Assembly (NCBI GenBank): GCA_010909165.1
Contig: MU008155.1
Coordinates: 1,550,001 to 1,614,000 of the forward strand
Reading direction: 5' to 3'
Length of the DNA: 64,000 bases
DNA from: Anthoceros angustus
Lineage: Eukaryota > Plantae > Anthocerotophyta
In this document: positions 34,101 to 64,000 of the stretch, in pieces
Numbering within the stretch: position 1 is the first letter of the stretch
How the letters are laid out: the number at the start of each line of letters is the position of its first letter
Translations under genes and position numbers: made by a program
The notes under the pieces: generated by a model
Database searches by the model: none
Told to the model about the DNA's origin: nothing
The model's input: only the letters and a program-made list of their open reading frames with translations

Positions 34101-36768
34101 AATACACCTTATGAACCAGGTGATACCTTTGTCTTTGTTCCACCTAGGACATCCCTAGCAACTCTAGCTACAAATGCAGCTGCCTCAATACTCGATCCTT
34201 CAGATACACCTGCCACATACAAAGAAGCCCTATCAGGCCCCTACAAAGCTGAATGGCAAAAGGCCATTGATTCAGAATACAATAGCCTCATCACAAATCA
34301 CACTTGGGAGCTGGTGACTTTACCTCCGGATAGACGCCCCATTACATCCAAATAGGTGTTTAAATTGAAGCTAAATCCAGACTGTTGCTCGCTTTAAAGC
34401 TCGCCTAGTGGCCCGGCTATACCAGTTCGTGGTTTGACTATACCAAAACTTTCATCAGGTGAAGCCGACATCTATGCGGATTCTTCTGACATTATGTCAG
34501 AAACACAAGCTCCTTGTCCACCAAATGGACGTTAAAACGGCCTTTTAAACGGAGAACTAAAGGAGACTATTTACATGAATGAACCGGTGATACCTTTGTC
34601 TTTGTTCCACCTAGGACATCCCTAGCAACTCTAGCTACAAATGCAGCTGCCTCAATACTCGATCCTTCAGATACACCTGCCACATACAAAGAAGCCCTAT
34701 CAGGCCCCTACAAAGCTGAATGGCAAAAGGCCATTGATTCAGAATACAATAGCCTCATCACAAATCACACTTGGGAGCTGGTGACTTTACCTCCGGATAG
34801 ACGCCCCATTACATCCAAATAGGTGTTTAAATTGAAGCTAAATCCAGACGGTACGGTTGCTCGCTTTAAAGCTCGCCTAGTGGCCCGGGGCTATACCCAG
34901 GTTCAGGGTTTGGACTATACCAAAACTTTCAGTCCACTGGTGAAGCCGACATCTATGCGGATTCTTCTGTATTATGCTGTAAAACACAAGCTCCTTGTCC
35001 ACCAAATGGACGTTAAAACGGCCTTTTTAAACGGAGAACTAAAGGAGACTATTTACATGAATGAACCGGAAGGCTACATTATAGATCCGACTAAGGTATG
35101 TCACTTACTCAAATCTATATACGGACTGAAACAGTCTGCAAGAATGTGGAATGCAAGAGCTGACAAGAAACTTCGCAAACTTGGGTTCGTACCTCTCACT
35201 GCAGATTGCAGTGTATATGTAATGAAGAGAACCAACCAGCTTTGTATCATTGCAGTGTATGTTGATGATAATTTTCTTTTTGCTAGTGATTCCCACATTT
35301 TGGTAGAAAAGAAAGAAGCCCTGTCACAGGAATGGGACATGACTGATGTAGGTCCTTTGAAGTTTGCTTTGGGCGTTCAGTTTAGCTTTAGCCCTGATAG
35401 GATCTGCGTCACCATCCACCAGGCACACGTCATAAGACAAGCATCATCAAATTCAACCTTTCAGCATTACATCCTGTCACCACCCCTATAGCATCTGGAG
35501 ATAAGTTATCCATAGAGGACTATCCAACCACCCCAACAGACATTGCAGAAATGGCAAAAGTACCCTACAGAGAAGCAATAGGTAGTCTCTTGTACTTATC
35601 TGGTTGGACTCGTCCGGACATCTCCCAAGCTGTAGGTGTAGTGTCTCGTTTCCTCTCAAACCCAGGTCAGAAGCACTGGACCGCTGTCAAAAGAATCCTG
35701 CGTTATTTGACAGGCACACAGGATTTTTCCATGAAATATACTGCTGCTGGAAGTGGTACACTTACTTCTTATTCAGATGCAGACTGGGCTGGCGACGTGG
35801 ATTCGAGAAGTCCATCGCTGCATATTGTCTGCTATTATGTGGATCCGCCATCAGCTGGCAGTCTAAAAAACTTACAACAGTGAGCCTCTCATCAATTGAG
35901 GCGGAATACAGAGCCCTATCACTTGCAACACGTGAAATCATATGGGTCCGTCGGTTCTTGGAGAGCATTCACTGGCAGCAACCGACAGCCACAATATTAG
36001 CATGCGACAATCAGTCAGCGATTGCTCTCACAGCGAATCCTATTCTTCATGCACGATCAAAACACATTGAGATACAGTTCCACTTTATTCGTCAAGCAGT
36101 TGAAACAGGCATGATCCGGCTTCAATATGTGCACACGACAGAGAATGTTGCTGACCTGCTAACTAAGGGTCTTCCTAAGGCTACACACGAGCAGCATTGC
36201 AGCTCATTGGGCTTGACGGGGACATCAACTTATCTGGAAAACAAGCTGCATGCCACAGCCTATGAATTTAGGATTCCGTGCCATTTGGGCATCCACGGAG
36301 AACACATCTCCCGTGTGTTACGCACAACTCAGTTATTGGAGCCAGTCCTGCATCGCCTACACACACGCACATGAATCAGTCCTGGATGAAGCATCAAGGT
36401 AAACAAATCAGGACTCACGGAAACTCTTAGCTTTATCGCCATACCATTGCTGCAAGCATGAGTTACGTCGATCAGCTTGCAGCGGATCTTCACACATGGT
36501 GGATACACGGGTTCTGCACTTCACCTTAATCACCTTGCGGTGAGCATGGGATTTAGGAGGCAATAATACCCAGTAGGCTAGCAGGATCGCTAGGGCAAGC
36601 TCAAACAGTCGAGCGGCGATCAGCCAGCATGCACAAGCCATAGCAAGGGGGCGCGCGTTCAAAGTACGTTCGCGGCACCAAAGCTAACAGTGTGGAGACC
36701 TTTTTTTTTTGCGCTTCACCTCAAGCCTTCCGCTGCGAGTTAAGATTGGCGTTAGGTCTGAGGGGGCG

Positions 36769-41930: not shown

Positions 41931-43310
41931 TCATTCCCAAACTGCATCTTCGTCCTCAGGAAGGGGGGGTCTCAAAACAACTACAACTTTCCCGAATGTC
42001 TTTGGGTTTGTGACAGCTGCTTTGGAGCCTAACCGCAGAGCCAAGCGCTGGTTTTCCTCTACCAGAAAGTAAGCATCTTCCTCCAGATCGACGTTTCCCT
42101 TGTCCACCACCAACAAAACAGGCTCGTTCCTGCCCTTCCTTGTAACGGTCCCCGGAGATGACCCCACATCTAAAACAGTTGCATCAGGGAACACCACAGC
42201 AATGGGAGCCCGGGACGTCACGACAGAGGACCATCCTGGAAGAGCGAGCCATGACTTCCACGCAGGTTGTGCACCGTAAACGTTAAAGGGACCATCACCA
42301 AAAGCTCCAACCAGAGGAGCTTTTTCCACAGACGCCAGGTCAGTAGCTGCAGGCAGTATAACAGGCAGGGGAGAGTTTTCCGCATCCTGTTTACTAGGAA
42401 GCCTCACCACCTGTAACCTAGCCCTAACGGCCTCCTCCCGCACGGATGACTCCGGAGCTGCTTCCAACCCTAGGGCTCCCCTCAGCTTGCTCCGTGCAGA
42501 TTCAGAAACGGCATAGCTGAGCCCCTTGCTGATCAGGCTCTCTTTCTCAGCATCGGATCTCACCTCCTTGCTCTGACGGTAACAAGCGAAGGCAAGACAG
42601 TCCCCCGGCCGGCCGTTGTTGAAGGCTCCCCACCCTTCCTCCCTCTTCCTCCTATCGTAGTCCTTCACAGCCCGGGCCAGCTCCTTGGCCTCTTTAGGGT
42701 CCATCCTTCTCTCCACGATCAACTCCGCCGAAGCCTTCCTCTGATCCGTGGACAGAATTCTGAGCTCGTACAGCAGCTCTGCCCCTCCCACATCGAAGAA
42801 ATTCAGCACCTCCGCGCCCATTCCCCCGGCTATGAGCGACAGCCGCACCTGGGACGCCCCCACGATCATGTTCTGCTCCACCCCGGTCACCCCGGTGGCC
42901 TCATCGATCTGCGTCGGGGTGTAGCCCGCCCGGGTGAGGAAGGGGACGACCAGCGCGTACTCGTGCCACAGCCCCCGCCTCTCCCTCAGGATCTGCAGCT
43001 GCTCCTCCGGGGACGCGGTACCCGGAGCAGGCAGGTTGGTGACCGGGGGCCGGAAGGGCTGGTACACGTCCTTCCCCCCTGCTGCTGCGCACACCCATCG
43101 CGCGCATCTCTGCCTTCCGCTGCCGCTCAGATCTGCACACGACGATGCGGCACCGAATCGTGCCGCCTGCGCTTGGCCGCTGCACAGGCTGAGAAAGGGA
43201 GGCGCGCAAGAGCTCCTGACGACGCTAGGGCTCCTGCACTTCCAGCCCTCGAAATGCTGGCAGATCGCCGCGGCACATCCGGGACCGGCAAGGCTGGCCT
43301 CCATGGCCAT
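41931..43310 (-). CDS. RAF1: Rubisco accumulation factor 1, chloroplastic, intronless, 459 aa
   Basis: Transit peptide, then YQPFRPP, LRERRGLWHEYA, IDEATGVTGVEQN..VGASQVR.SL, LYELRILS..QR, ELARAVKD, and C-terminal VVVVLRPP....DE..WE. Confidence 0.95.
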   Translation of the reverse strand: MAMEASLAGPGCAAAICQHFEGWKCRSPSVVRSSCAPPFLSLCSGQAQAARFGAASSCADLSGSGRQRCARWVCAAAGGKDVYQPFRPPVTNLPAPGTASPEEQLQILRERRGLWHEYALVVPFLTRAGYTPTQIDEATGVTGVEQNMIVGASQVRLSLIAGGMGAEVLNFFDVGGAELLYELRILSTDQRKASAELIVERRMDPKEAKELARAVKDYDRRKREEGWGAFNNGRPGDCLAFACYRQSKEVRSDAEKESLISKGLSYAVSESARSKLRGALGLEAAPESSVREEAVRARLQVVRLPSKQDAENSPLPVILPAATDLASVEKAPLVGAFGDGPFNVYGAQPAWKSWLALPGWSSVVTSRAPIAVVFPDATVLDVGSSPGTVTRKGRNEPVLLVVDKGNVDLEEDAYFLVEENQRLALRLGSKAAVTNPKTFGKVVVVLRPPLPEDEDAVWE

Positions 43311-43622: not shown

Positions 43623-46284
43623 CTAGACGAGCTCGACATCTGGATGGCTATGGCCACCATTGGATTGCGGAAGACGGGAGGGTGACACGGTCACAGGGTT
43701 GTGCACTTTGGTGGGTCGTGAAATGTCAGTGGCAATGGTATCGGCACTATGAGTATCAATGACGCTGGCCCAGCGCGGCACTGCATAGCTGCGCCGTACA
43801 ACCAGCAACCAGCCGACGATGGCCAGGGCAGTGGTCACAGCCAGGGTTAGAAACAAGATCCAGATGGACCGCAGAGCGGCCTTTACCTGCGGGCATTGTT
43901 GCTGGATGGCGGAGAAGGCATCAAGAACGAAAGAGCAATTGGCCAAGACCTGGATCGCGGGGACATCTTCCGTCACCAGAGTCTGCAGTCCGGAACAGAG
44001 GAGAACCGTCGCGTTGTACTGTTCTGGAGTCACCATCTGGAGTCTCAAAGCGCACGCAATCGGGTCCGGGTCGTGGCACACGAATGGCGCAAGCACCTGC
44101 CATATGGGGAGTTGCTGTCAGAGCACGGACTTCATTCATGGGCGGCCATCATCTGGGGGAAGGGAGGAGACGGCACTTACCTCGGGCAAGTTCCCGATAG
44201 GGACTGTGTTCGGTGGACAGGATGGTGTCATGGTGGTTAGACTCAGGGTTGAGTGGTTTGCGTTTGCAAAGGGGTCGCACACAGTAGGGAAGCCGGGGCC
44301 AAAGTCGATGCCGAGGTCGCGTTGAGCGATGGCAAAGCTGTCGTTTATCTGAAGAGAGGAGCCACAAGAAGAGGGATCGGTAAACAGTGCGGAGCAGCTG
44401 CGTACGTGGAGGAGAGATACTTACATCCCACACGATTATACCCAGCTCATCCTGAAGTTGGCTTAATTCTTCCACAGATTCTCCCTGTAGCTTGCGGCAA
44501 GGAATAATGGGTTCCAGTGTAGTGCTTTCCGGGTATTGCTGGTATTCTTTCAGAGCTGTGCAAACGTCAGCTGCAACACTGCATCCACAAGAGACAAACG
44601 GGGTGAGGTGAGTTATGATCAACCGTTGGAGTGTAGACACCTTTGTTGCTTGCAAGGTGGAAGTCATCCCTGGAGAGGTACTCACTTGTCGACAACCAAG
44701 TATATTGCAGATGACAGCCATACGAGTAGGGTGAATAGCCAGCAGATGAGCGTGACCCTGCCAGTTCACACACTGTAAGATGACGTACCAGGCCACTACT
44801 ACTGCCGGTGATCAGGATGGGGCACAAAGGTAAAATGTTTGAGAACTGTTACCACAACAACGTATGACCTACTTTGCGAAACCTGAAAAGCATTACGCCA
44901 AGCACTGCAGCTCACAAGAAGAATGAGAAGCAAGTCAGTCTCACAAATGGCGGGGATGGGAACGTGCGGTGCAGTGCTGTTTGACTCCAAAAGTACATAC
45001 ATACCAAGGCCAAGGAAGAGCAGGGCAACCTCCACAGCCGAGATAACGTACAGAGTGATGTTCCTGCAGCCACGGAATCATCAATACGGCTTCTGCTGTA
45101 CGAGGAAAAAGACAACCTGCCTACGGGCACCGAACAAGGAAAACAACGGACAGAGGTGGTTTTGTAGCTTACATGGGTTTGAGGACTTTTCTCATCATCT
45201 TCAAAACTTGTGACACCTCACGTTGGACCGAGCCTGCTTCCTTGTTGATGTCGGTCAAGTCTGAAGTATCCCCATAGTCTTCGTCCAAGGAGATGCCCAG
45301 CGAGCTGGTGTTGACTTGCATTAGTGAAGAAAGATGCGATGTGATATTGGTGACAGCCAGCGTAGCTGTTTCGGTTGTGTTGTAGATGATGTCCTCCACC
45401 TTCCTCATGTCCTTCTGGAAGTTCATGTTGTTATGGACTAGCATCCCCAGGAGTCCTCTGCAAGTTAATTGCCTCAAAGCTCAGGTGCAGGCAGAAATAA
45501 TCCGAGTCTTGCCATATCCAAGAACACTGAACTGCAACAGCAAATTCAGTCAAGACAGTGACTCACACCGATATCAGAGCCACAGCTGCGGCCAGCGAAA
45601 GAGCTCCCCCGCCATGAACAGCTGGTAAACCCCTTGCTCCAACCCGTTTCCTGAGCAAGCGCTCCCTCCACCAAATCGCGGGTATCCCAACAAGAATCCA
45701 TACTACGCCTAGAGACACCAGAGTGATACCTGTGAAGACAACAGACTGCCCGCGTTCCACATCCGATCAGTACCAGTATCAGCACCGAACCGAATTCTGC
45801 CTCACGCTGGCCATCACAATTGCTGTCAACATACCGCCCAGTAGTGCTTGTTCTTGACATCAAATCCCCCTCTATATTTTTTAAGCTTGTCAAACGGGTC
45901 TGGGCGATCCCCACGCACAGCCAAAGGCCGGCTCGAATTGTCCGGCACCTGAAGCGCCTCCCTTCTTCCCAATCCCGCCACCTCCCGCCCGCCATGCCGA
46001 TTCCACACCCGGTCAGAGCGCAACCCTGCGTCTGAGCCTAGCACAAACCCTGAAGTCCCCGGATTGTGCTCCCGGCCCGCTGTAATCGCATGGCGAGCGG
46101 CACCTGGACCACCCCCACCGCCATCCGGATCGTGGTGAATTCGCAGCTGCTGCTCAAGAGAAAAAATCCTGCCCGAGTCGCCTCCAAAAGCATGAATCCG
46201 TTCCACGCCACTGCACACGCTAGCAAGCAAAGGCAACACTCCCAATACAATCCATCTCATCAATCCCATGACTCCCTTGCCCAA
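43623..46284 (-). CDS. Plant tweety-like multi-pass membrane protein, multi-exon
   Basis: Signal-peptide-like start, RPDPFDKLKKYRGGFDVKNKHYWA|SVVFTG, TM segments, ADVCTAL..YQQYP..TTLEPIIPC, Cys-rich extracellular segment (NCSFV..AF..I...CP), final TM. GT-AG junctions are phase-consistent where checked. Confidence 0.85.
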
Positions 46285-46912
46285 GCTCTCTTCTCAAAGG
46301 CTCCAGAAGCAGCAGCCAACTACTCGTGTCATGGTCCAGAGACGGCGATTGTGAAACGCATAAATGAATTCCGCGCTTTATTTAATCCCTCACACCATAC
46401 TTTTACCAAATCGGTCGCTGCCTGCGGACCACTGCTCGGCTCAGCGCCCGCCATCAACCTGCCCGTACCCGAGCAGTGGTGTCCACTGTCGGGCCCGCTA
46501 GAGAGGAAACAACCAGGGAACGATACTTCCACGTCCAGTCGAAGCCCGCCTCTGAAATTCTGAGTTCCTAAAAGCAGTGGGCGCTCATTGCAAACTTAGT
46601 CAAGGAGCAGCAGCAATTATACAGGCGTGGCGCATCAGAAGCCGTGAACCTGCACAGTCCGAGCGCGGTCGGCGCAACTACAGGCTCCGCGTGATTGCGA
46701 GCCAACAACCGCGAGACGCCCCCGATCGGGGTCCTCGAGGACTCTACAACGACGCTAAGAAGGTGACCAGGAAGATGGCCAGGCGGTGGGACGAGGCATG
46801 TGCGGGGCGGGAGGTCTCGGTCTCGAGCCTGGAGCCGGACAGGACAATATGCGAGAAGGACGCTAGTCGTCCAACATCCCCGTCTAGAAGGATCGCGCAT
46901 GAGTTTCTCACG

Positions 46913-48112
46913 TCAGTCGTACTTGACATGCTTCTGCGCGCTGTGGTGCGGGATGGAGTGCCATGTCTCGCACTCGATCCCGCCAGGGCAGCGGCGGTAG
47001 AAGCGCGCGTGCTGCGTCCCGAAGCGGATCAGCGCCGTCTCGGCGTCGCGGACATCCAGGCCCCCGCGGGCCGCGAGGCCCCGGAGCGACAGCAGGATCG
47101 AGGACGGCGCCTCCTCCGAGTGCAGGAGCTTGAGATGCCGGAGCGCGCTGAGGGCCCGGGTGCCCAGCTCCGGGGCCGCGCCCGCCCACAGGCCTCTGAG
47201 CTCGCGGAGGAAGACCCCCGCGGTGCTCGGCCCCACGCCGTAGATTTGGCCCACGCTCTCCAGCAGCTCGTCGTAGGTGGGCACGTCCTTGAGCGCGGTG
47301 ATGCGCCCGCCCAGCTGGGCCTGCAGGCTCTGCGCCAGCTTTTGCAGCCGGGAGGATAATCTCCGGTTGTAGACATCCGGTTCCTCCAGGCTCTCCAGGA
47401 GTTGCGTCAGACGGCGTTCCTCCACGCCCAGCACGTCCGCCGGAGTCCGGATCCCGCCTTCTTCCAGCCGACGCAGGAGCGAGGCCGAGGGGTGGAAGCT
47501 GGAGCGGCGGTTGAAGAGCACCGACGCCAGGAACCAGCGCTCCACCTCCTCCTCGCTCCGGTCCACCTCGATGCCCAGCTCCCGGGAGTAGCGTCCCCCG
47601 TACTTGTCCACCAGCTGCTGCAGCACCTTGGCGGCCTCGTCTGCGTTCAGCGGCTCCTGCGCCCCGGCCCCGCTTGCGCCGTGGTAGAAGACGACGCAGC
47701 TGTCTGCGTCGTCCGTGTTGCCTTGCTCCGGGCCGCTGCCCAGCACCGAGTCGTCTCCTTCCCCCATCGCCTCTAGATCTGGGTCCGCGCCGTGGTAGCC
47801 GCTGCCGGGGGATCCCAGCGCTTCTCCCTCCTGTGCATGCGGGGATGCTAAGCAAGGCACGCCCGTGTGGTGGCTCAGAACCTGCATGCTCCGCTCCACC
47901 TTCTGCAGGCGGATGCGGACAGGCTTCCGGGCCCCGGGGCTGCCGCTGTCTTCAGATCCGTCTACGTGCTCGTGCTCAGGCTTCTCTTCCCGCGCTGTCC
48001 TCTGAGCCTTGTTGCTCCCCGCCCGCCACGGCTGCAGCTGCAGCTGCCTCGCCCGCGCCGGCCTGTTCCGAGCTGTTATCCCGCTCCCGAGCCGGCGCCC
48101 CTTCGGATCCAT
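46913..48112 (-). CDS. Protein with a C-terminal prokaryote-type HhH-GPD (endonuclease III-related) domain; true start possibly 48338
   Basis: Continuous ORF. The domain from ~47614 reads LVDKYGGRYSRELGIEV..SEEEVERWFLASVLF, GIRTPADVL, HhH motif IYGVGPSTAGVFLRELRGLW...P, DVRDAETALIR, CPGG.EC. From memory this matches the archaeal/bacterial HhH-GPD-like family (..YSEELGI..WFLA..LFG..I; GIGP.T..IFLRELR..W). Confidence 0.75.
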   Translation of the reverse strand: MDPKGRRLGSGITARNRPARARQLQLQPWRAGSNKAQRTAREEKPEHEHVDGSEDSGSPGARKPVRIRLQKVERSMQVLSHHTGVPCLASPHAQEGEALGSPGSGYHGADPDLEAMGEGDDSVLGSGPEQGNTDDADSCVVFYHGASGAGAQEPLNADEAAKVLQQLVDKYGGRYSRELGIEVDRSEEEVERWFLASVLFNRRSSFHPSASLLRRLEEGGIRTPADVLGVEERRLTQLLESLEEPDVYNRRLSSRLQKLAQSLQAQLGGRITALKDVPTYDELLESVGQIYGVGPSTAGVFLRELRGLWAGAAPELGTRALSALRHLKLLHSEEAPSSILLSLRGLAARGGLDVRDAETALIRFGTQHARFYRRCPGGIECETWHSIPHHSAQKHVKYD

Positions 48113-49956
48113 GACCGCGAGCGGAGGATGGCCCGAGTCCTCCCGCCTCGGCGTCTGATGCCGCGAGGCGCAACGGGCCGTACATGTAGCTTTCCGAGAA
48201 GAGGAAGTCCTTGATGCTCCTCGCCAGCGCACAGATGCGCGTCTTCATTCCTTGCGGCGCCTTCCTCCCCCGCTTCCTCACGGAAGTCCTCGCCGCCGAT
48301 TTCCTGCCTCTTTTGCTGTGCGGCCGTGCATTTCCCATGGTGGGTGTCCGGCGCGAGGGGCAGGAGCCTCACGCTTTCTCCGACCCCGGGGTCTGCCTCT
48401 GCCGGCTCGATTTCGTCGCCAGCCCTGACAAGCAGTGTGTAGGGTGGGGGACAGGTGTCACCGCCGCTCTCGGAGGCGCAGACGCAACTGCAGCTAAGTG
48501 TGTCACGCCTGGTGCGTCATCCGCTTCAAGTTCAGCCGATTGCGGCGGACGAGAACTAGGAACGAGCTGGCAGAACATCCAGCACCGGCGACGGAGATCT
48601 TCGTGTGCAGGTTTCTGCTGCAATTGCAAGCAGCGGCCTGAATGGCTTCGGCTTCTGGGCCGGAGCCTCGGCCTAGGATCCACCTCTCCCAACTTAGGCC
48701 TTCAGTGCAGGCACCATTCGCGAGACCTAGACACACACACATTCCCTTGACAAAGGGATTCTCGGAGGGATAAGGAAGGCTGCACACTTCTCGGTCCCAA
48801 TGTTTTGTCTGGTACCAGAACAGGGCTCTTCAACTGCGACATGCAGCATTGCGCACTTGGACTGAGGTCCGATCGCAGCCTGCAGGCATTTGCAGGGCGG
48901 TGCTAGCTAAGCTCCAGGTTATTAAAGCTTGAGCATTCCGAGGCAATGTTTTTGTTAGGGCCAGGGTTTCTCAACGTTTCTCTGGTGTTTAGAAGTAGCC
49001 ATGAATGCTTGTGCGTGTGTAGCCGAGCATCCAGGCCTTGTGTCCCTACGCCCACTGTCTTGGCTGCCAGCCACCCTTCCTGGCGCTGGAGCCAACAACC
49101 CTCCGTGTGTCCGTACCATAACATTGCCTTCAGTGCAGGAGCGACTGATCTGAGTGAACGCCTGAACGCCAACGCTGATCGTTTCTGTTTCTTTTGTAGT
49201 CCTCGCTGCCGTGAACTGTAGCATTCAGTTCTTGCTGTACTGACCTGGAGAGTCTCCAGTATGAACTGCGAATGTCCACATGTTTTAGCCAGTGATGTGC
49301 ACCTGCGGGCCCCTCCCAGTATGCCCATGCATCTGTGTCCGCTACAGTATTTCTGCCAGATCCAGGTAGAGCCAGGAGCCAGTGTATGGGACAGTAACCT
49401 CACTCTCACCTTGCATATATGTGTGTTTGTGCAAATGTGTGTAGGCCCGTTAAGTCTGAGCAACTTTAACACTTATCAATCCTTAACTAACACAAGAGAT
49501 GCCACCCACATTGTTACTTGACACTTGTCTTCCACTCAACTCTTGAAATTCAACAATCTACGTCAAAAGAGTCTACACATGGCCAAGCAATATGAGAAAC
49601 TGAGCAAAGTGTAGTTCTTCTTGGCAGAGGGCTTTTTATCATCTTGGGTCCCTTGTTTCGCACTCGGCATTATATTACCATATCATTTTGGTACCCTCCA
49701 GGACTTGTGTATCTACTCATGTTTATGTTGTTCCCCCTTTTTCTCGGGGTAGATGGGATTTCCCATCTCTTTTCTTTTACATAATGTCTCTACAACATAT
49801 TCAATTAGCTTGTTTGGAAAACTAAGGCTTGTTTGGGGGAGGTCTATACTTAGTTCTACATAGGTAGATATTTGAATAAAATTTAAAATTTGATAAAACT
49901 ATTTTTAATAAAATATAAAAATATAAAAATATAAATATAGATGTTGAATCTTTTTT

Positions 49957-60584: not shown

Positions 60585-63500
60585 TTATCTGAAGGTCTGG
60601 CGTGTTTTTATCATCCGCTTTAGAGCAGTTAGCCAAAAGCCACACTCATCCCAGTCACTAGTTGTCAGTTGCACCTGCAACCCACACACCATCGGATTAG
60701 AGCTGAATCAGGAGCTGCCTCCCTTTCTTCCCCTCAGCTAAGTAAGGACCTGTGGCATGATGCACAGTTTTACCTGGATCTGTGAAGCGGTGGCATAGTC
60801 TCCAGCATGCAGACACTGACAAAGCTGTATTAGCTTCGCTGAGGCATTAGGCGAGATATCTCCCACATTCAACTTCAAGAACAGTGCACCCAGCTTCTTT
60901 GAGTTGTCTTCTATTTCTCGCTTGGACTTTGGATTTGCTCTGCTGCCGCCGATGGCTTCTGATGTTTCGTTGAAGAGCTTGGTCAAAGTCGCCACTACAG
61001 GCTTCAGCTCAACTGCAGAGATAAATACAGAAAAACCGGCAACCATCATAATGAAAAGTTAAGTCAACGTGCCGAAAACATCAGTGACAACTAGACAATC
61101 TATGAAAACATACCAGCTACATTTGAGGTGTCGACACTCTGAACAGTTGGTGGTGGTGCAGGGGGTGCAGTGACGGCCGGTGGACTTTCTGGCTGTATTG
61201 CGTGGATTTGCTGAATTTGCGGACTTGGTTGGGATGTTGTTGGGTAAAGCACAGCTGATGGCTTAGAAGCAGAGGAATGTAAAAGAGGAGATGTGGTCGG
61301 GGGACCATGGGCTACTGGGTTTTCCCAACCCATGGTGCTGGATGGGCTTGGCACATTTCGAACAACGGGACCTTGTTTTGGCTCAAAACCTCGAACTTGG
61401 GCACCAGGTTTCAGAATGGTAGGCTGTAGTCCTGCTTGATAGGGAATCGGTGCCGGATTATAGGGGATTGGTGCCTGTCGAAATGGTGCCGGTTGAAAGG
61501 GAGTTGGTGAAGGACTCTAAAGCAAGAAAGGCAGTTACGTAAGATGTAAAATAAAAAGGACAAAGACATTGAAAAGCGCTTGCACCAGCAAATCAGAGCG
61601 GCAACAGCTAGCAAGTTAGAACAACATTCAACGACAGCCAATCAGGAGTAAAATCTGAAAAGTAAAGACATACAGTGTAGGACGGCCCAGGAATAGCTTT
61701 TGCTTGATCCGGAATGAGAAAGCTTGTCGGCTGGATGTTCCAAACAGGCACACAGAGTTTAAGTGCAGGCTACAAAGCACAACAAAATCCAATTGCAGCC
61801 GCAGTGTTCAAAGCTTACTTGAACAGCTTGTCTGCCAGGTTCATTATAATTTGGTAGACCAGGGACAGTTGAATACATATTCTGAGGGACAAGTGGTTGA
61901 GGTTGTGAACGAGGCTGATAAGATGGCTTCGCATAGCTCTGCACAGAAGGTTGTCCATATTGATGTCCATATCCATACGCAGTTGCAGGTGCAGCGGCTG
62001 CCTGATAAGTCTCCTGAGAAACGTACGTTGGGCATCCACACCCATCAGACCCAGACAACTAGCCACACAACTGTGAAGCTCAATCTCAAGATCATTACCT
62101 CGCTGGCTGGGCTTGGAACATGTTGGGTTACCTCCACAGGTTCAGGTTGAAAACCTCCTTCGACAGGGACAGCTGGATGAGTAGCACCTGCCCCAAACAG
62201 TGGGGTGGATAAGAGACAACTTAAGAGACTATACTCGGGAATACCTCCAACAGGTTCACACTGACCAGAAAGTACCTTGTCCACAAGAAGATAACCTATC
62301 TCGCAGGATTGCTAGGTCATGCACTGAATGCTCGTCAGATACAAATGACAGATACTTCAATGCTGTGTCGACTAGCCCCTGACTTGCTAGAAGCTCTGCA
62401 TAAGTACCAAACAGCCTGGCCAATGCTGCACTGACCATTGACTGCCCCGTCGCTAGAAAGAGAACCACCGTCTTCTCCATCAGGTCCTGCACACTAAGAA
62501 GTCTTAGGTGCCCATCCGAATCTCATGCATGCAGATACAAACAAAAGAGCAAATCGCAAAACGTGATGGGGATAACCTGCAGCCTGTCCACAAAGTTCTT
62601 GCCTACACTGCTGACTTCAAGGTCGCGTGACCAGATTTCAACAGCCCTCTCAATGTTCCCAGCACAAATGTAGCAGAGAGTAGCAGCTTGAGTCTCATGG
62701 GCGCCATCCAGCTTTCCAGCCAGCAGATCAGCCAGTTCTGTCCACTCGTCACTACGGGCATACTGCAAAAGCGCAGGAGTTTCGTGTAAGGGGAAATCAG
62801 TACCTAGAATGTCAAATCCAGGCTACGCTTGTGAACACCTACAGGAACATTGCGACAGATGCATACCGTGCAGAGCAAAGCAAGTGTCTCCCTCCATGCC
62901 TTTAAGGGTCTGCTTTCAACCAGCCCTTTCAGGTCGTTGTTAATTACTCCAGAAACAATCTACAATGAGCATAATTTGTCCCACCAGTTACCAATCCACC
63001 ACAGACTGTTCAAAAAGACATTATGACAGTCCACATACCTTCAGGTAGGGTCGGTGACTTTGTTTCACGTAATCATTTCGAGTTTTGTCCCACAGATCTC
63101 CACCTTTTACAAAAGCAAGAATAAGGGCATCTGCCATTTTGTTGGCTTTAAGGCAATGGTCCACAGCTTTTGGAAAATCGCCAACAACCAATGCCTTTTG
63201 GATAGCAGCTTCAAGCTCAGCATCGACTGCATCTCGTTCCTCTTCAGCTTCAGTGTGCTCCTCACCAGTGTGCTCAGAGACACTATCAAGGGACTCAACT
63301 CTGCTTGCATTCTCAGATAGAGTTCCCCTAGGAGTTTGAATGTTGTTAAAAAAGTCATCTGCGTCATCTAGTTGTGAACCTCCATTCAGACCAAGAGGCT
63401 GACCGGATGAAGCAGTTGGCAGTGTCTCCACCCTGTTCTCAGTAAACCCGTCATGAACATTCAAGTTCAAGTTCTGTGCAAACTCTTCACTGACCACATC

Positions 63501-64000
63501 TTCTGCGGCTCTTGAAGACTCTGTATTGTCACCATTTTCCTTCACTTCAAAATCAAGGTGAGACAGGAGCCTCTGCCTGGCATCCTCATCGAACATCACC
63601 TTCAGGAAGCTCCAAGTCTCCTTTTCCTCCTCAGACCTGAAGACTAGTGTAAAAAAAACATGAACCTTGCAGTACATAACTAGTCAGGCACAAGTGGTCA
63701 GGCACCTTACCCTGATGAGAGAGACTTGCTTTCACAAAAAGTGAACAGCGCTGACTTTTCTTTCAATGTAATTGCTGCTTCAAACTCAGTTGACCGTTTG
63801 ACAAGCCCTTCCTCGGTTATAACACTATGCAGACGAATCTGCACGACAAAGCAAATCATAATTTGAAGTTACACTGTTCATAAAACAGAGCAAATCCGGA
63901 AATGCCTCATACCTCATTGCTTTTTGCCATACCTCAGTGGTAGGGGGGGTCCCTTGTGGTACTTTCTTTGGCACAAAAGATACAAGCTTTCCACCAAAGC
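60585..64000 (-). CDS. SEC31: COPII coat protein SEC31, 3' portion (5' end beyond the window)
   Basis: [21 protein letters not shown]...MADAL, QYAR..EW..L...[20 protein letters not shown], a Pro/Gln-rich region, [22 protein letters not shown], and last exon [25 protein letters not shown]. Confidence 0.95.

Follow-up and report, generated by a model that had tools for sequence, protein, structure and literature searches.

The DNA-3-methyladenine glycosylase (MAG) of land plants was acquired from bacteria (PMC5570899), and bryophytes carry a DNA methyltransferase that came from actinobacteria (PMC7027989). Here a gene of another family is described from the hornwort Anthoceros angustus. The window, i.e., the whole stretch of 64,000 nucleotides that was analyzed (assembly GCA_010909165.1, contig MU008155.1, positions 1,550,001 to 1,614,000 of the forward strand), carries on its minus strand a gene whose product ends in a domain of 245 amino acids that belongs to the HhH-GPD (helix-hairpin-helix) superfamily and is related to endonuclease III. 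On balance, the gene is probably the hornwort representative of a land-plant gene that arose by one ancient bacterium-to-plant transfer, gained an N-terminus, was inherited vertically, and would encode a DNA-binding HhH-GPD protein. An earlier, sequence-only reading of the same locus had proposed a domesticated prokaryotic gene, possibly specific to this lineage and joined to a new eukaryotic N-terminus. The prokaryotic source and the family are borne out below; the age of the acquisition and of the N-terminus has to be revised.

A small HhH-GPD branch near endonuclease III

The open reading frame (ORF) covers 46913..48232 on the minus strand and has 439 amino acids when counted from a GTG; an ATG in the same frame (48110-48112) gives 399 amino acids over the span 46913-48112. 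The HhH-GPD domain occupies residues 195-439 of the longer form (46916..47650, minus strand) and reads through, uninterrupted and without an intron, to the stop codon at 46913-46915. This is as the sequence-only reading had it, and all of the motifs that it quoted (YGGRYSRELGI, WFLASVLF, GVGPSTAGVFLRELRGLW, DAETALIR, and CPGGIEC) are found in the translated ORF. Because the local DNA is GC rich (0.67-0.71 around the ORF) and other frames also hold long ORFs, the length of the ORF alone is weak proof of a gene, and it is homology that provides the proof. In an exhaustive phmmer search of 1.84 billion representative sequences, 286 proteins match the domain at E <= 1e-3. The match to the plant protein P0012 (SRR33208241), the closest relative, has an E-value of 2e-80, and those to 14 further representatives lie at about 1e-45 to 1e-30, which puts homology far beyond chance.

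The single window protein has no Pfam match, as the gathering score of PF00730 is not reached, and a phmmer search of the domain against the PDB returns noise only. Among the NCBIfam models, nth is not reached and TIGR03252 is hit only below threshold, at 12.5-14.3 bits versus a cutoff of 136.5 bits. When 35 family members are taken together (alignment A1), PF00730 gives weak matches in 5 of them (best E 0.0026) and TIGR03252 in 27 (best E 1.3e-7), and the family profile finds endonuclease III structures in the PDB at E 2.5e-6 to 2e-4. The sequence profiles match endonuclease III, MutY, and Ogg only. In the HMMER alignment, the LPGxGPxT of the family's HhH pairs with the LPGIGRKSA of endonuclease III (Nth), the family's PPLDxRA pairs with the Nth VDTH that contains the catalytic Asp, and the C-terminal Cys region pairs with the iron-sulfur loop of EndoIII-3 from D. 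radiodurans.

Structure leads to the same place. The AlphaFold2 model built from A1 (pLDDT 91, pTM 0.88) shows the two-lobed all-alpha fold with a helix-hairpin-helix that defines the HhH-GPD superfamily. Nearly all of its top 50 Foldseek matches are HhH-GPD DNA glycosylases, and the remainder are QNG1, a protein of the same fold. An independent structure comparison (VIA-align) against 48,161 chains gives Z 12.9 for endonuclease III (2abk, 200 residues aligned), 12.4 for thymine glycosylase (1kea), 12.3 for EndoIII-3 (8a5g), and 11.6 for QNG1 (7ugk), with MutY, MagIII, ROS1, AlkA, and OGG1 scoring lower than QNG1. The relationship to HhH-GPD proteins and endonuclease III that was first proposed from the letters of the DNA is thus supported by profile, model, and fold comparison alike. 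The family should be filed as an unnamed sister family, a small uncharacterized HhH-GPD branch related to endonuclease III that has no Pfam model. It derives from EndoIII-like proteins and would work in a similar way.

The residues that define the better-known enzymes are only partly kept. The HhH hairpin reads GVGPSTAG (47216..47239, minus strand), with Ser where Nth has its lyase Lys; this column is V, T, or S across the family, and the GxGxKTA form is not seen. The Gly/Pro-rich loop is retained in the window copy, and the Asp that follows it in the superfamily is replaced by Gly. This is G163 of the loop E161-L-G163 (47162..47170, minus strand; numbered from the first residue of the domain), which occupies the column of the catalytic Asp in the Nth VDTH. 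Both the replaced lyase Lys and the lack of a GPD/VD Asp had been noticed in the sequence-only reading. The Asp column holds D in 70 of 74 bacterial sequences from the sister clade described below, and in the distant members it is mostly Ser (24 of 47). Among the plant sequences it is D in four, E, S, and N in one each, and G in two, namely the window copy and P0012; the Physcomitrium protein is one that has the Asp. At position -2, where the window has E161, seven of the nine plant sequences have E or D, versus P in 55 of the 74 sister bacteria.

Other positions are more constant. W39, F147, and E204 are invariant in A1, and S22, R149, E150, R152, and D202 are nearly so. The stretch D202-A-E204 (47039..47047, minus strand) is kept by all plant copies, and the invariance of E204 and near-invariance of D202 across the family make these two candidate functional acidic residues. 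The sister bacteria have 61 positions with a conservation of 90% or more; the window copy keeps 44 of these, and the other plant copies all keep fewer. Judged by its residues, the window copy is well maintained yet without the textbook catalytic residue.

The iron-sulfur loop is degraded in part of the family. Distant prokaryotic members keep the four-Cys motif of the endonuclease III type, with the exact C-x6-C-x2-C-x5-C spacing in P0063, and the actinobacterial/chloroflexal clade and the plant clade have the last two Cys only (CPGGxxC). In the window copy these two are the remnant CPGGIEC (46970..46990, minus strand), and the full 4Fe-4S motif is missing. As a separate observation, the bacterial and plant clades without the cluster conserve H172 (47135-47137), H214 (47009-47011), and C221 and C227 (46970-46990), which lie at or near the former iron-sulfur loop and may form a replacement metal (Zn) site there.

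The pattern of residues suggests different capacities for the bacterial and hornwort proteins. The bacterial relatives look like monofunctional glycosylases because they conserve the Asp. Glycosylase activity of the hornwort copy is doubtful, given that it has, like P0012, Gly in place of Asp; this copy would be either a non-catalytic binder of lesions or DNA, or an enzyme that uses other acidic residues (E161, D202, E204). A bolder idea, which we put forward as a speculation with a small chance of being right, is that non-seed land plants keep a bacterial-derived clusterless HhH-GPD protein with Asp-independent chemistry. Such a protein could be a glycosylase of a new type, or it could read DNA lesions or base modifications without catalysis; it would be recruited through the plant-only motif FLxSDSYMYGPL and have become dispensable once seed plants arose.

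A land-plant clade beside soil bacteria

The longer matches that contain the C-terminal domain come from land plants. Orthologues are found in the moss Physcomitrium patens (XP_024381862; gene PHYPA_011776), the liverwort Riccia sorocarpa (KAL3682978), the lycophyte Selaginella (XP_024520579), and the ferns Ceratopteris (KAH7277668) and Adiantum (KAI5055955, P0029), in all five plants on large nuclear contigs (0.5-137 Mb). Among the 20 matches looked up from the phmmer search, a set that takes in the proteins with long N-terminal extensions, every named eukaryote is a land plant. This representative search returned no copy from a seed plant, and no green-alga member was identified.

The plant proteins have an N-terminus of their own. 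With tblastn of the plant orthologues onto the window, a second conserved block appears upstream of the domain and in another frame (48350-48171). Together with an alignment of the plant proteins (A3), it defines a plant-specific conserved N-terminus at 48171..48338 (minus strand), which starts at an ATG (48336-48338) whose frame differs from that of the domain. It contains a basic cluster of the form KRGRK...RKRGRK (in full KRGRKSAARTSVRKRGRK, 48237-48314) and the plant-only motif, which reads IKDFLFSESYMYGPL in this copy (48171-48215). The basic cluster and the FLxSDSYMYGPL motif are common to all plant sequences except P0031. In A3 the motif is present in P0012, P0013, P0018, and the proteins of Ceratopteris, Physcomitrium, Selaginella, and Riccia, to which Adiantum can be added. 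The bacterial homologues, short proteins of 230-270 amino acids, lack it. P0031 stems from ERR2041114, a 1KP-like transcriptome run; it is transcript-like and could be from an alga.

Between this N-terminus and the domain lies a low-complexity linker rich in G, S, A, and P (47651..48170, minus strand). The sequence-only reading had described a low-complexity acidic N-terminus that was newly acquired. Low complexity holds, and acidity applies only to the second half of the linker; the true conserved start lies further upstream, in the other frame. The extension is indeed confined to eukaryotes, but it is old rather than new, being shared across the plant orthologues. The idea of a lineage-specific acquisition has to be given up, as the orthologues of Physcomitrium, Riccia, Selaginella, Ceratopteris, and Adiantum belong to one clade and all members but P0031 carry the motif.

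The prokaryotic side of the family was surveyed by scanning species-representative prokaryotic genomes, seeded with nine close bacterial sequences, which gave 101 loci in bacterial genomes. Most of these are in soil Actinomycetota, i.e., Acidimicrobiales, Gaiellaceae, Solirubrobacterales, Streptosporangiaceae, and Micromonosporaceae (the last including Catelliglobosispora koreensis DSM 44566), and the remaining loci are in Chloroflexota, Dormibacterota, and one Gemmatimonadota metagenome-assembled genome. Distant family members are found in Dehalococcoidia, Bathyarchaeota, Paceibacterales (candidate phyla radiation), and sediment metagenomes. The label of an archaeal or bacterial family is therefore apt insofar as the nearest relatives are prokaryotic rather than plant NTH1, OGG1, MUTYH, or ROS1, and its archaeal half fits distant members only. 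The gene contexts at loci L001-L006 are plainly bacterial, with GatCAB, PASTA kinase, toxin-antitoxin pairs, and a universal stress protein (Usp) adjoining.

A maximum-likelihood (ML) tree of 130 rows and 232 columns was computed under LG+C20+F+G4 with posterior mean site frequencies (PMSF). It left out rows with less than 80% profile coverage, among them Adiantum P0029 and the shorter Physcomitrium isoforms, as well as sequences that shared 80% identity or more with a retained row. In the tree, all nine plant rows group as a single clade (ultrafast bootstrap, UFboot, 100; SH-aLRT 91). Its sister is a 75-row clade of Actinomycetota, Chloroflexota, and Dormibacterota (94/87), and the two are held together at 98/91 with 46 distant prokaryotic rows outside. 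Within the plant clade P0031 is basal, followed by the window protein and P0012, which as a pair are sister to the liverwort/fern and moss/lycophyte groups. Beyond the nine plant rows, no unnamed match with at least 80% domain coverage fell into the plant clade.

The plants are thus a single clade within an otherwise prokaryotic family, the pattern left by a transfer, and the 130-row tree and the distribution support the prokaryotic origin that had been proposed. The sequence-only reading had counted a vertically inherited eukaryotic clade as evidence against itself, and in part such a clade exists: it comprises land plants, with no green-alga member identified. As orthologues in moss, liverwort, lycophyte, and ferns fall in one clade and have the same motif, the ancestor of today's land plants already possessed the gene. 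The data are explained most simply by one bacterium-to-plant transfer, on the land-plant stem or a little before it, and by vertical descent from then on.

A plausible course of events can be drawn from this. The donor family would be an endonuclease III-related HhH-GPD branch without the lyase lysine, and in the branch nearest to plants two of the four iron-sulfur cysteines would already have been missing. The eukaryotic N-terminal region would have been gained later than the transfer and ahead of the split of the living land-plant lineages; it is made up of a basic cluster resembling a nuclear localization signal (NLS), the FLxSDSYMYGPL motif, and a linker that is disordered and in part acidic. 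The basic cluster suggests that the protein is targeted to the nucleus. Vertical descent would then have carried the gene into hornworts, liverworts, mosses, lycophytes, and ferns, with a seed-plant copy not found. The protein would bind DNA through its helix-hairpin-helix and probably inspect a flipped-out base.

Some features of the bacterial loci and matches can be added. No strong conserved bacterial neighbor was found around the family gene, and the largest neighbor cluster is an antisense artefact of the family gene itself. A Pribosyltran/alpha-beta-hydrolase fusion lies near the family gene in 13 of 80 loci. At L003 (973-2618), L004 (7156-8801), and L005 (761-2405), a Usp gene is located directly upstream and abuts or overlaps the family gene, which suggests an operon. 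P0014, an "endonuclease III" from an IMG metagenome (903-bp contig), was ruled out as a bacterial homologue; it matches the moss protein P0015 (Physcomitrium-type) exactly across the domain and represents moss DNA in an environmental sample.

The register break and other explanations

Several observations weigh against an ancient transfer followed by the upkeep of a DNA-binding protein. In the tree the plants stand beside the bacterial clade as its sister and are not nested within it, so that no donor is singled out and the direction of transfer rests on distribution and rooting. The canonical Asp is Gly in the window copy and mostly Ser in distant members, which makes any chemistry assigned to the whole family tentative. 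In this assembly, a shift of one base separates the reading frames of the conserved N-terminus and the domain. The RNA-type run of the same sample, a single and small one, covers the neighboring gene with no contig on the gene itself. Finally, GC at third codon positions (GC3) in the domain (46916-47650) is 0.91 versus 0.67 in the nearby RAF1 gene, a codon bias that is extreme for a gene with a plant history of hundreds of millions of years.

The frame problem raises the possibility that the gene is decaying in this genome, with a real register break, a lost catalytic Asp, and no expression. The frame of the N-terminal motif is closed by the TGA at 47976-47978, and that of the domain is shifted by 1 nt. 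From 48338 to 46913 there are 1426 nt, or 3n+1, and the break can be placed somewhere in 47979-48170, inside the linker. Many GT/GC...AG pairs that might bridge it as an intron are present, as expected in GC-rich DNA, and none is convincing. The break is either an assembly error or a real frameshift; in the latter case, translation from the ATG at 48112 could nonetheless yield the 399-amino-acid product without the motif. An independent contig from a DNA run of the likely source sample (45878-48359, ~2.5 kb) differs from the window by 21 one-base gaps, and those listed fall mostly in homopolymer runs (C5, A6, G5), which shows that indel noise is present in these data. One of the two data sets, the window or the DNA contig, carries systematic indel errors, and this bears on every frame call in the genome.

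Decay would fit not only the one-base break but also the Gly in the Asp column, the RNA-type run that covers the neighbor and not the gene, and the fact that no annotated protein of this hornwort gene is in the protein collections searched. The gene appears to have been missed or mis-modelled in the genome annotation. What speaks for a functional gene is that the 245-amino-acid domain is intact and tops the plant copies in conserved positions kept, and that the ratio of nonsynonymous to synonymous change (dN/dS) versus P0012 over the domain is 0.23 (NG86; dS saturated at 1.6), which indicates constraint on the domain. P0012 has the same Gly in a gene where N-terminal part and domain share a single intact frame, so the Gly is old and tolerated, and the homopolymer gaps show that the indel noise is real. 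Decay of the gene in this genome is accordingly judged unlikely.

That there was no transfer at all is an improbable alternative. The gene would then be an ancient one of the plant lineage, inherited vertically or from the plastid ancestor, and lost nearly everywhere else. The sister position of the plant clade, outside rather than inside the bacterial clade, would suit this history, as would P0031, which lacks the plant motif and could represent an alga. Yet the named eukaryotes among the 20 matches looked up are all land plants, and in the tree no extra unnamed match with at least 80% domain coverage joined their clade. On the bacterial side the relatives belong to Actinomycetota and Chloroflexota rather than to cyanobacteria, and the nearest bacterial clade has the derived two-Cys state in common with plants.

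The fold also admits an activity other than on DNA, with the protein acting as a nucleoside or nucleotide glycosylase such as QNG1 of queuosine salvage. QNG1/DUF2419 structures align at Z 11.6 and 10.7 over 213-220 residues, and a large part of the family does without the canonical Asp. However, the sequence profiles point elsewhere, to endonuclease III, MutY, and Ogg only; similarity in sequence to QNG1 was not detected, and the HhH hairpin is conserved, all of which makes this very unlikely.

The idea that hornworts alone received the gene from a prokaryote in recent times, and that the N-terminus was newly invented there, gains something from the identities of the window domain, which are about equal to bacterial (39-45%) and other land-plant (roughly 37-42%) proteins, and from the very high GC3 and intron-free domain. 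It is highly improbable in view of the monophyly of the plant sequences (100/91) and of an N-terminal motif found in the proteins of fern, moss, lycophyte, and liverwort alike. Bacterial contamination or a chimeric assembly join, for which one could cite the high GC of the gene (0.69) and its bacterial-type relatives, is scarcely credible, as the 45878-48359 DNA contig bridges the gene and the first exon of the neighboring plant gene, the protein carries the plant-only motif, and the orthologues sit on megabase-scale plant contigs; these same facts establish nuclear integration.

Surroundings and known systems

The gene is found among plant genes. RAF1 (Rubisco accumulation factor 1, 41931-43310), which the sequence-only reading had placed nearby, is present, and its best named relatives are in ferns, mosses, a lycophyte, and liverworts (44-52%), followed by a seed plant and Closterium (38%); this puts the host among the land plants, beyond those lineages for which proteomes have been annotated. 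A copia-type reverse transcriptase fragment (34823-35491), a cytochrome P450 exon (10380-11273), and a Sec16-like tetratricopeptide repeat (TPR) fragment (63021-63677) lie elsewhere in the window. Together with RAF1, this content is that of ordinary plant DNA and supports a nuclear context. The downstream neighbor is an ORF with a signal-peptide-like start (45826-46284, minus strand), ~630 bp downstream of the stop of the gene. Two RNA-type contigs cover its exons at 45835-45968 and 46091-46253 with a splice-like loose end, which indicates that this neighbor is expressed. A tweety-like gene had been claimed at this distance; the ORF start at 46284 and the splicing agree with the claim, and the tweety-like identity was not confirmed by Pfam or Atlas.

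Rfam gives no match over 45.5-50.5 kb. Just upstream of the gene, at 48459-48944, blocks of 62, 43, and 181 nt are 90-95% identical to contigs from the runs of other organisms (coded C, D). The sequence between the three blocks is unrelated, and the largest has stops in all six frames; they look like a repeat or a conserved non-coding element.

If the account of one ancient transfer is true, the bacterial genes that plants took up at about the time they colonized land include one more with a DNA-repair fold. The phyletic pattern is clean, with hornwort, liverwort, moss, lycophyte, and fern copies and no seed plants found. The family is without a Pfam model and without a studied member in plants or in soil Actinomycetota and Chloroflexota, and its combination of features is unusual: the HhH is conserved and the lyase Lys missing, the iron-sulfur loop is degraded, and the Asp can be dispensed with. 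The hornwort genome paper and Yue et al. 2012 do not list the family, and no searchable paper carries the gene identifiers or an HhH-GPD transfer in bryophytes. The transfer catalogues of Ma et al. 2022 and PMC12513842 lie outside that coverage and may already list the family uncommented.

The land-plant MAG (PMC5570899) and the bryophyte methyltransferase (PMC7027989) are precedents for the entry of bacterial DNA-repair genes into early land plants. They are other protein families, and the present family, for which no seed-plant copies were found, is unmentioned there. Among curated models the nearest is TIGR03252, an uncharacterized "HhH-GPD-type base excision DNA repair protein," yet the window protein scores so far under its cutoff that a different family is indicated. 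The clusterless MutY (MutYX, PDB 8uuc) is also an HhH-GPD enzyme without an iron-sulfur cluster (Z 10.4). It has no detectable close sequence relationship to the window protein, in which the catalytic Asp and Glu of MutY are not conserved. Endonuclease III (Nth) and the EndoIII-3 of D. radiodurans are the closest described systems in structure. The window protein differs from them in having no lyase Lys, two of the four cluster Cys, and Gly in place of Asp, and its identity to endonuclease III over the structural alignment is 14%. Even so, it has the same two-domain all-helical fold (Z 12.3-12.9), and it shares the HhH hairpin and the Gly/Pro loop with them; the C-terminal Cys loop can be aligned too, as can, in the bacterial relatives, the column of the Asp.

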